This document shows positions 33,225-36,400 of a DNA stretch of 64,000 bases, piece by piece (the stretch's first letter is position 1; each line of letters begins with the position of its first letter). The notes beneath the pieces are model-generated. The model did no database searches, had not been told where the DNA came from, and saw only the letters and a program-made list of their open reading frames with translations. Position numbers and translations under genes: made by a program. The DNA comes from Glycera tridactyla (Eukaryota), in NCBI GenBank assembly GCA_965644265.1, contig OZ286459.1, positions 128,154,001 through 128,218,000 of the forward strand. Reading direction: 5' to 3'.

Positions 33225-33405
33225 TTACGCGCCCATCATTTTCTTAACCATATACCCAGGCATCGAATAGAAGAAAAGGGCTAGGATTACGGTTAGAAGG
33301 GCGCCAATGATGGCTTTGATGATCACCCATTTGTAGTTCCTCCACAGGATATACTTGAGGGCCTTTAGAGGGCTCAGGAACCACATAAACGTCACATCCG
33401 GGCGA
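33225..33405 (-). CDS. otof: otoferlin terminal TM exon 3 ([59 protein letters not shown])
   Basis: acceptor tttcttttaccctaatatag|T CGC CCG; 181 nt to TAA; AATAAA follows 7 nt after the stop. Confidence 0.9.
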
Positions 33406-36400
33406 CTATATTAGGGTAAAAGAAACAGTACAATTAACATCTCAAAGAAAGTCTCAAGTGGATCACAGTGACTAATTTGCAGTATGAACAGTGCATCAAT
33501 AATTGTTTTCCTGTGAAAAACAAAGTCCTTTCTGGTGTACCCTTTATGCAACATCATGTATCAAGAAGATCCTAACAAAATGCACATGGCGCAATCTGTG
33601 AACTCATGGATCAGACGAGTTTCCTGTTCTAGGTAATGGGAACATGACAGAAATCAATACATGCTAGTTGGTTATACGCATGACGTATAGACATGTGTAT
33701 TAGATGAGTGATTTACCCCGCTTGACCATGGCACGTGCCATGGGATGACTTGCATCTTCTGAAAAGACTGATGTGGTAGGCATCTCTTTATCTTGATGCC
33801 TATCTGCTCTTTTGTCAATGTGGGTACCTACAGATACACCATATATTGGTTTGACCACTGGCGAGATATGTATGCTCATCATGGAAAATGTTGATATACA
33901 TGTGATGAATATGCATGCATGATGGTCACGTGATGAAGACGGCTCTTGCTGGCCCTATGCACCCATCATTTTCTTGACCATGTATCCAGGCATAGAGTAG
34001 AAGAACAGGGCCAGAATTATAGTGAGAAGTATGATAACAATAGCTTTGATGATGACCCATTTGTAGTTCCGCCAGAGGATATACCGAATAGACTTGAGAG
34101 GGCTCAGAAACCATATGAACGAACTGTCAGGACGGCTATATCAAAACAAAAACAAGTTATTAAGAACTTTCAATTATCCCTTAACACAATATGCATTGTC
34201 TGGAAATAAAATCGAACATGTTTATGAGCAACCGTCGATCTAAGCAAGTATTTGCAAGTCCATTACTGTCGGACTTTCTCCATGAGGCCATTTGATCCCT
34301 GCTTACATTATGTAAATGTGTATTCAAAATATATGTAGCAATGTGTACCCAACAAACCAGGCAGGAAATAGCATAAAACGTTCTGACAAACTTCTGTGAT
34401 GGGTATGTATATGTGTATCCATGCAATGAATATAATGTTGCATATCAGCAAATATATCTGGACCTACTGACTAATTGGGTTCTGTGGTGGTTCGAAGAAT
34501 ATCAGGCACTCAAAAGGGATTATCAAATGAACAAAGTGCCAATCATATACCAGATGGATGTACACACTAAACGTCAGGCAAACACGCCAAATGAGATGTA
34601 TATGGGGGTGGGCTTCGATTGACAGATGTTCATGAATTCCCTGTAACTGCCAGCGGCTCAAAAAGCAGTTTGGTGTGGTAGTTTTCCTCATTACCAATAC
34701 CATTGAAAATACCGAATGGGTTTCTGAATATTTTGGTCATTCCTGATCCAGTGAATACGGGTTTTTCTCACTAATCTTTTCCCGGCCCCAGGGAGGCTCC
34801 AGGCATGCGCAGACAGCCTGATAATTCTAGTTCTGTCGACGAAGCCTCCTCGCTATCAATGGTAACCAATAGGGGTAATACTTTAAACCTCATTATTCAT
34901 GTTAATCCATTCTTCATGGGCTCTTTAAAGCTTTCATACATATCAATAGAAAGACCAGTTATCAATCTGCAGAATATGGGAATAATTGCATGAGAGTGAA
35001 CTAGGACATTTCTGGCCTGAAGTTAGCTATCTTTCTGGATGTCTGCTCTGAGTAATCATATGCAGTGGGATAGCAGTCAACCCACGCCTGCCCCTCTTCC
35101 ATACATAACCCCCTGTAATGTTGGTATGTGGTTATTACCTCACATCTAAGTTCACTTCCCAGCTGGTGAGAGTGAGATCAGATATGTGACTTTTATCATC
35201 ACAACTTCCAGTTAAGGTGAGGTAAGTGACCAATGTACATTTTCACAAGGGTCAGGACTAACTCACCAGAAGGTCATAGATCGAAGCCTCTCATCTGAGA
35301 TTAGTGAATTTTGATGAGATATCCCTGACTGCATCACTCAAGCAGGTTATCATCCTCGTCGGCGGAACTGGTATTATTGCCACTAATTTCACCCTCTTAG
35401 ACTGAAGAGGAGCTAGTGAAAAAAGCCCGTATTGCCCATGGCAGGTTTTATGCAATTTTCTAGTCAAATTATTGTCTGAATCTTGCTGAATCACAACTCT
35501 GCTGAATCTCTGCTGCCAGATATCGGAATGAATACAAGGACTGCAATGAAGTATACATGTCTGAAACTACCCTTGAATCCTTGTCACTCATACACGCATG
35601 TACACACCTATGCACTCACACACATGAATATGGAACATTGATAGTTTATAATATGAATCATCACTCAAATCCCAAGCTGGAACAATTCACAACTAATCTC
35701 TGAAAAAGGAATGAAGCTAGTTATACACATATGAACACATAAGTAATGCATGAGACCTGCCATTGTAAATGCACTCCTTTGATATGAATTGTAGATATCT
35801 GTCACTGATGTACAAGAGTTTCAGAATACACAGGCTTCGATATAGCATCAGTGAATGGTCATGAATTCAGGTGCAAGCCTGCCACTATTGAATGAGGTCA
35901 TGTACATATACCGTGGCCACTATGCTCCTAATATTTTTTTGACCATGTAGCCAGGCATGGAGTAGAAGAAGAGGGCCACCATAGCTGTCAGAAGCATAGT
36001 AACAAGCGCTTTGATGATCACCCATCTGTAGTTTCTCCAAAGGAGATATCGAATCGACTTGAGAGGACTGAGGAACCATATGAAGGAGGAGTCAGGCCGA
36101 CTAGAGAAGTAGAGAAAAAAAGCAAGAAATATCATCAATCAGCATGTCTCTAGAATTCATGCCATTGGGCCCTTAACTTCAAAGATGGATATCTTACCAA
36201 ATTTTGTGATTGAACCCGAAGACAATATCTATCCAGCTGACATCATTTGGCTTGGTGGGACAATTATTTTGGGGAAGATGTTTTATGTTTATCTTTGTCC
36301 GACACCAGGCTGGGGAAGTTTCTATCATGTGCTGACGTGTCTTGGGACGGAGAGAAAACTTCCTACTCGAAATGGAGAGCGGAAATGAACAGGCAGCTCC

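Follow-up and report, generated by a model that had tools for sequence, protein, structure and literature searches.

The stretch of DNA analysed here, which we refer to as the window, is 64,000 nt of Glycera tridactyla contig OZ286459.1 (128,154,001-128,218,000), and the coordinates below are those of the window. It holds the part of a minus-strand ferlin gene equivalent to residues ~1450-2063, with the N-terminal two thirds of the gene lying beyond the window end. Upstream coding exons located by tblastn between 43598 and 61416 (minus strand) cover the C2E-C2F region, ~550 residues preceding the tail. They lead to a last common coding exon at 42838-42938 (minus strand), read from the sequence as 33 codons that end in ...PLEKP, followed by AA; it gives a collinear tblastn match to residues ~1968-2004 of the Owenia and Glandiceps ferlins. 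The whole series, from 61416 to 42838 and on into three successive tails, is collinear with these full-length proteins in tblastn searches, which found no further ferlin exons downstream of the three tails in the window.

The nearest named proteins are mollusc 'otoferlin-like' ferlins, with 77-79% identity over ~570-620 residues of the C-terminal part. The tails carry a 17-residue motif that differs from the ...FLWFTSPWKTF... of the other ferlin type, and they share the ending PGYMVKK with the annelid Paralvinella; molluscs and arthropods have PGYTVKK. Invertebrates generally possess one DysF and one non-DysF ferlin, the latter (type 2) being recognized by the lack of a DysF domain and the presence of C2-FerI-C2 and FerB (Lek et al., 2010, PMC2923515). 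Judged from the sequence of its C-terminal part, the window gene is a non-DysF, otoferlin-like invertebrate ferlin. An earlier sequence-only reading of this DNA had called it otoferlin; the best named matches justify 'otoferlin-like', but it is not otoferlin proper.

Two other features of the gene were seen along the way to its 3' end. The start of the last C2 domain is encoded by a tandem exon pair (48891-49037 and 49120-49293, minus strand), each copy marked by its own 14-residue opening. Since this exon is present in a single copy in each of the other five genomes compared (Paralvinella, Owenia, Helobdella, Lottia and the compact L002 genome), the pair looks specific to the window's lineage. 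The last intron contains a repeat-rich patch at 40450-41131, made up of related 62-74 nt repeats, a 93-nt inverted repeat (40869-40961 and 41007-41099, 91% complementary) and a (TCCA)n microsatellite at 40630-40705. The patch probably derives from a small transposable element.

The last common exon ends in CCA AA/gtatgt, so that its donor supplies the first two bases of an Asn codon. Downstream of it lie three paralogous terminal exons of 181 nt each, all on the minus strand: E1 at 35920-36100, E2 at 33955-34135 and E3 at 33225-33405. Each consists of 1 nt, 59 codons and its own stop, which is TAG in E1 and E2 and TAA in E3. The acceptors read ...ctctag/T at 36100, ...atatag/C at 34135 and ...atatag/T at 33405, and the first base (T, C and T, respectively) completes an Asn codon with the upstream AA in all three. 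Over positions -25 to -4 the pyrimidine fraction is 0.91 in E1, the strongest of the three, 0.64 in E2 and 0.73 in E3. The 59-residue tail encoded by E1 and those of E2 and E3 all match Pfam Ferlin_C (PF16165) at profile positions 99-154 of 154, scoring 49.2, 50.4 and 51.2 bits against a gathering cut-off of 29.4 bits. The best 19-residue hydrophobic window covers residues 27-45 of 59 in every copy, leaving 14 residues after it. Our reading of strand, coordinates, acceptors, phase, codon number and stops was exactly that of the earlier note. Tblastn and blastn searches of the 64-kb window gave exactly three copies and no fourth or degenerate one.

Likeness among the copies at the DNA level is confined to the exon and ~20 nt of acceptor region; it does not extend past the stop codon, and the flanking DNA cannot be aligned, as had also been stated from the sequence. 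We considered whether the array might be an assembly artefact in which allelic haplotypes, or a duplicate that was joined wrongly, had been collapsed in tandem. This is scarcely credible, because the copies differ from one another at 36-53 of 177 nt (20-30%), their flanks are unrelated, the spacings between them are unequal, the N runs (9423-9752, 12949-13172 and 27412-27657) are all far from the terminal exons, and the same architecture occurs in independent assemblies of other species. Haplotype collapse in particular, which the sequence-only reading had itself raised, is ruled out by the divergence of the copies and their unrelated flanks.

To assess selection, we compared the three exons pairwise by Nei-Gojobori counts. 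E1 and E2 gave a pS of 0.57 and a pN of 0.10 (dN/dS 0.10), and E2 and E3 a pS of 0.69 and a pN of 0.10 (dN/dS 0.057); for E1 and E3 the pS of 0.79 is saturated, with a pN of 0.16, and dN/dS was not computable. Differences at codon positions 1, 2 and 3 numbered 7, 4 and 25 for E1/E2, 10, 4 and 27 for E2/E3, and 12, 6 and 35 for E1/E3. When the observed number of substitutions was put at random positions, in 50,000 simulated trials per pair, the mean was 24-32 amino-acid changes, compared with the 10-17 observed, and a stop arose in about three quarters of the trials. For every pair, 0 of 50,000 trials were as conservative as the observed exons and free of a stop. The near-saturated synonymous sites and the outcome of these trials together imply that the copies are old and that selection has maintained the coding sequence of each in frame. 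E1, E2 and E3 are thus under strong purifying selection (dN/dS ~0.06-0.10), which is what had been proposed before any such ratio was computed, and the values are not near 1.

These figures bear on the possibility that one or two copies are spliced today and that the rest are undecayed relics of exon duplication. E1 would be the obvious survivor, as its polypyrimidine tract is by far the best and it is the first that the spliceosome meets. However, frames, acceptors and stops are intact in all copies despite the state of their synonymous sites and with dN/dS as low as given above, whereas after so long a time a neutral relic would have gathered stops, indels and many replacements. Two other genomes have also kept three intact copies. 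We regard the relic explanation as improbable.

The three predicted tails differ at 10 of 59 residues between E1 and E2, 10 between E2 and E3, and 17 between E1 and E3, the first two counts repeating those made earlier. The variable residues are 4, 5, 7, 15-17, 19, 25, 32-35, 39-41, 56 and 57. They gather in the cytosolic half of the helix (32-41), the juxtamembrane segment and the last residues, a distribution that the earlier note had picked out and that our count bears out, with 7 of the 17 falling within helix positions 31-43 (hypergeometric P 0.03). A stretch of 14 residues that makes up the luminal half of the helix is invariant among the three window copies. Mean Kyte-Doolittle values over residues 31-46 are 2.23 for E1 (lowest), 3.07 for E2 (highest; its helix is a string of 16 residues) and 2.59 for E3, which has a juxtamembrane segment of its own (DVTFMW...KALKY) and a Gly within the helix. 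Since most changes affect the cytosolic half of the helix, the three tails offer anchors of different hydrophobicity, bulk and beta-branching. Most of the replacements are conservative hydrophobic swaps (I/L/V/M), however, and the three anchors may therefore behave alike.

The arrangement suggests a simple splicing model. The three AG acceptors share one phase, so that the donor of exon 42838-42938 would be able to join any one of E1, E2 and E3. Each terminal exon would supply a whole Ferlin_C tail, consisting of the juxtamembrane segment, a single transmembrane helix, a short luminal end and the stop. Since every copy carries its own stop, only the joined terminal exon would be translated, the tail would be set by the acceptor that the donor at 42838 chooses, and a mechanism of mutual exclusion would not be needed. 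The products would be three tail-anchored proteins, identical except at 10-17 of their last 59 residues. We infer with good confidence that the three tandem terminal exons of this gene are alternatively joined and that each copy is used, giving three proteins that differ in their anchor; the purifying selection on the copies and the hemichordate RefSeq isoforms described below lend indirect support to the use of each exon. For tail-anchored proteins, the insertion pathway and sorting are affected by the hydrophobicity and shape of the helix. The identity of the anchor would then matter for insertion or sorting of the protein, and the three window anchors may differ in this behaviour. Otoferlin is described as a tail-anchored protein in work cited by later papers (Vogl et al., 2016, as cited in PMC10984619 and PMC10394277).

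In mammals, OTOF joins either exon 47 or exon 48 and so produces two different anchors with a brain/cochlea bias (PMC10394277, PMC7768390), in agreement with the tissue-biased two-exon switch to which the sequence-only reading had appealed. By analogy, the choice among E1, E2 and E3 may be regulated by cell type or stage. Of the two mammalian anchor exons, only exon 48 has mutations that cause deafness, which implies that anchor sequence matters there (PMC10394277).

An alternative is that all three exons are used but that the selected difference is regulatory, residing in 3' UTRs, poly(A) sites or expression contexts, with the anchors themselves interchangeable. Apart from the conservative nature of most replacements, this would fit the existence of lineages with a single tail, and it would also fit Paralvinella palmiformis, in which each copy has its own canonical hexamer downstream (AATAAA or ATTAAA). 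In the window, the first canonical poly(A) signal after any copy is an AATAAA at 33212-33217 (minus strand), 8 nt past the E3 stop. Between the E1 stop and E2 and between the E2 stop and E3 there are no AATAAA or ATTAAA hexamers, compared with 3.0 expected from shuffles (P ~0.05); variant hexamers do occur, and canonical ones are only weakly fewer than chance. Transcripts ending in E1 or E2 may therefore be processed at variant signals or extend to a shared 3' end, and the window gives no clear sign of separate 3' ends. Moreover, the variation is concentrated in one part of the helix, the Paralvinella copies differ at comparable places in theirs (as judged by eye), and the deafness mutations confined to one mammalian anchor exon likewise speak against interchangeable anchors. 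We consider the regulatory explanation unlikely, if less so than the survival of relics, and favour alternative anchors.

The likeness to OTOF exons 47 and 48 (TMD2, brain, and TMD1, cochlear, respectively) extends to several details: these are also paralogous 3' exons that carry the full juxtamembrane segment, helix and stop, they follow a common upstream exon at the same ...KPN/RPD junction, and in mammals one tail is translated per mRNA. The window differs in having three copies rather than two, and all of them are 'W-type' (ILWRNYKW), with none in the exon-47-like 'C-type' clade (LICTRYKW). In mammals, exon 47 lies internally and has to be skipped for exon 48 to be joined, whereas no conserved donor was found after the stops of the window copies, which for this reason look like nested or alternative last exons. 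The array also resembles Dscam-type clusters, being composed of tandem paralogous exons of which one would be used per transcript. Unlike the mutually exclusive internal exons of those clusters, terminal exons that each end in a stop can do without an exclusivity mechanism. A repeat search of 33100-42900 returned scattered inverted matches of 17-29 nt and no docking or selector inverted repeats common to the three acceptor regions, although weak or G-U-rich pairings would be missed by it.

To place the copies relative to the vertebrate exons, we built tail trees from 59 columns. Vertebrate tails are of two types, exon-48-like (FIWHNYRW) and exon-47-like (LICTRYKW), and together form a clade (96-98/87). 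Hemichordate MICVRFKW tails (P0200, P0215) group with the vertebrate exon-47-like tails (P0190, P0291, P0026) at 100/95, and in Ptychodera a W-type tail is found in the same gene as the MICVRFKW tail. As hemichordates share it, the exon-47-type anchor may predate vertebrates. All window copies fall outside both the exon-47-like and the vertebrate clades; the window triplication is therefore independent of the mammalian pair, and its members are not counterparts of exons 47 and 48.

Tandem tails occur in other genomes as well. Paralvinella palmiformis has three (L001 8832-9008, 9507-9683 and 10492-10668), each with a CAG acceptor, phase 1 and a stop. Three are likewise present in the species represented by GCA_022702875.1 and GCA_022702835.1 (L010 6613-6789, 7039-7215 and 7498-7674), where the exon preceding them is 88% identical to the penultimate exon of the window. 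In both species the tails are in tandem and of 59 codons each. Owenia fusiformis has two tandem tails, and the leech Helobdella robusta and Lottia gigantea have one each. In Branchiostoma belcheri there are seven within ~8 kb (L007 3718-11353; GCA_025402995.1, JALCYT010000034.1), located directly after an exon ending in ...PLEKP+AA; each of the seven is preceded by AG and a strong pyrimidine tract and has 59 codons and a stop. RefSeq isoforms of the hemichordates Ptychodera flava and Glandiceps talaboti are identical up to ...KPN and then continue into different tails, so that the tail junction is modelled as alternatively spliced in these two species. With three copies in two other genomes, seven in amphioxus and alternatives in hemichordate RefSeq models, the three-way cassette cannot be called peculiar to the window's lineage, as it had been. 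Among the listed RefSeq isoform sets, those of Haliotis, Biomphalaria, Physella, Octopus, horseshoe crabs, beetles, ticks and corals have one tail each. Multiple anchors are thus not essential, given the single tail of Lottia, of the four mollusc genera with RefSeq isoforms and of Helobdella.

An ORF in the related ENA assembly ERZ26052378 is 92% identical to E2 (P0162/P0163), and a search with the three-tail profile gave nothing new in the way of E1-like or E3-like ORFs from relatives. The downstream neighbour of the gene in Paralvinella, NDUFB6, had no tblastx match in the window. Four ENA metagenome scaffolds from an animal with very short introns (L002-L005) encode a tail that has 80-81% identity to E1 and E2 and carries the same 16-residue motif; just one copy lies in the 0.2-0.6 kb available downstream.

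Several public records of these tails are irregular. The B. belcheri array is annotated as two small genes of concatenated tails (KAI8499153.1, 'hypothetical protein', and KAI8499151.1, 'FerI'), and bogus small B. belcheri 'proteins' of two or three joined tails came up when 1.8 billion proteins were searched with a profile. The third Paralvinella tail (L001 10001-10671) is entered as a separate 72-aa hypothetical protein, LSH36_251g03024, and the Owenia isoform CAH1774768.1 (L006, gene at 10001-52932) fuses pieces of two terminal exons; both are annotation artefacts caused by the tail arrays. In the teleost Scortum barcoo, a 105-aa 'hypothetical protein' (P0006, KAI3367147.1) consists of parts of two nearly identical exon-47-like tails, which points to either a mis-model or a further, recent duplication in that fish. 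A ferlin tail of 53 aa from a JGI metagenome (P0169) is named 'LPS O-antigen subunit length determinant protein (WzzB/FepE family)' and is evidently a mis-annotated eukaryotic fragment.

In a first tree that included the annelid-like sequences, the window copies grouped together (92/87), a grouping that dissolved after the GCA_022702875.1 species was added. AU tests of positional one-to-one orthology among the annelid-like species gave marginal p values of 0.03-0.23, and the 59 columns yielded no clear one-to-one pairing with the Paralvinella or GCA_022702875.1 copies. Synonymous divergence is 0.57-0.79 within the window and 0.28-0.60 within the GCA_022702875.1 species, compared with 0.61-0.92 between species. 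That copies within a species are closer at synonymous sites points to repeated lineage-specific duplication or to an old array with occasional gene conversion.

In the literature searched we found no paper describing alternative ferlin anchor exons outside mammals, and the word 'alternative' is absent from the main ferlin phylogeny paper; this agrees with the earlier statement that no description of three such exons was known. As an evolutionary feature the three-anchor array is real and has good support; it extends the known mammalian two-anchor switch, and it is not unique to this lineage. We tentatively propose, as a reading that falls somewhat short of probable, that the anchor exon has been duplicated in tandem time and again among bilaterians, that each lineage diversifies the cytosolic half of the helix and that anchor identity is a regulated determinant. 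This proposal draws on the copy numbers: at least three annelid-like genomes have three each and amphioxus has seven, while hemichordates have two or three and vertebrates two. Several public annotations mis-model such arrays as separate small genes or fused tails. Long-conserved independent arrays of three to seven anchors are natural experiments on which helix positions are free and which are fixed, and they supply closely matched tails for probing the insertion and sorting of a tail-anchored calcium sensor. If duplication has indeed been recurrent, the exon-47-type anchor would predate vertebrates, and the ferlin anchor would not be a passive tether but would set, for example, the insertion pathway, vesicle pool or cell type.
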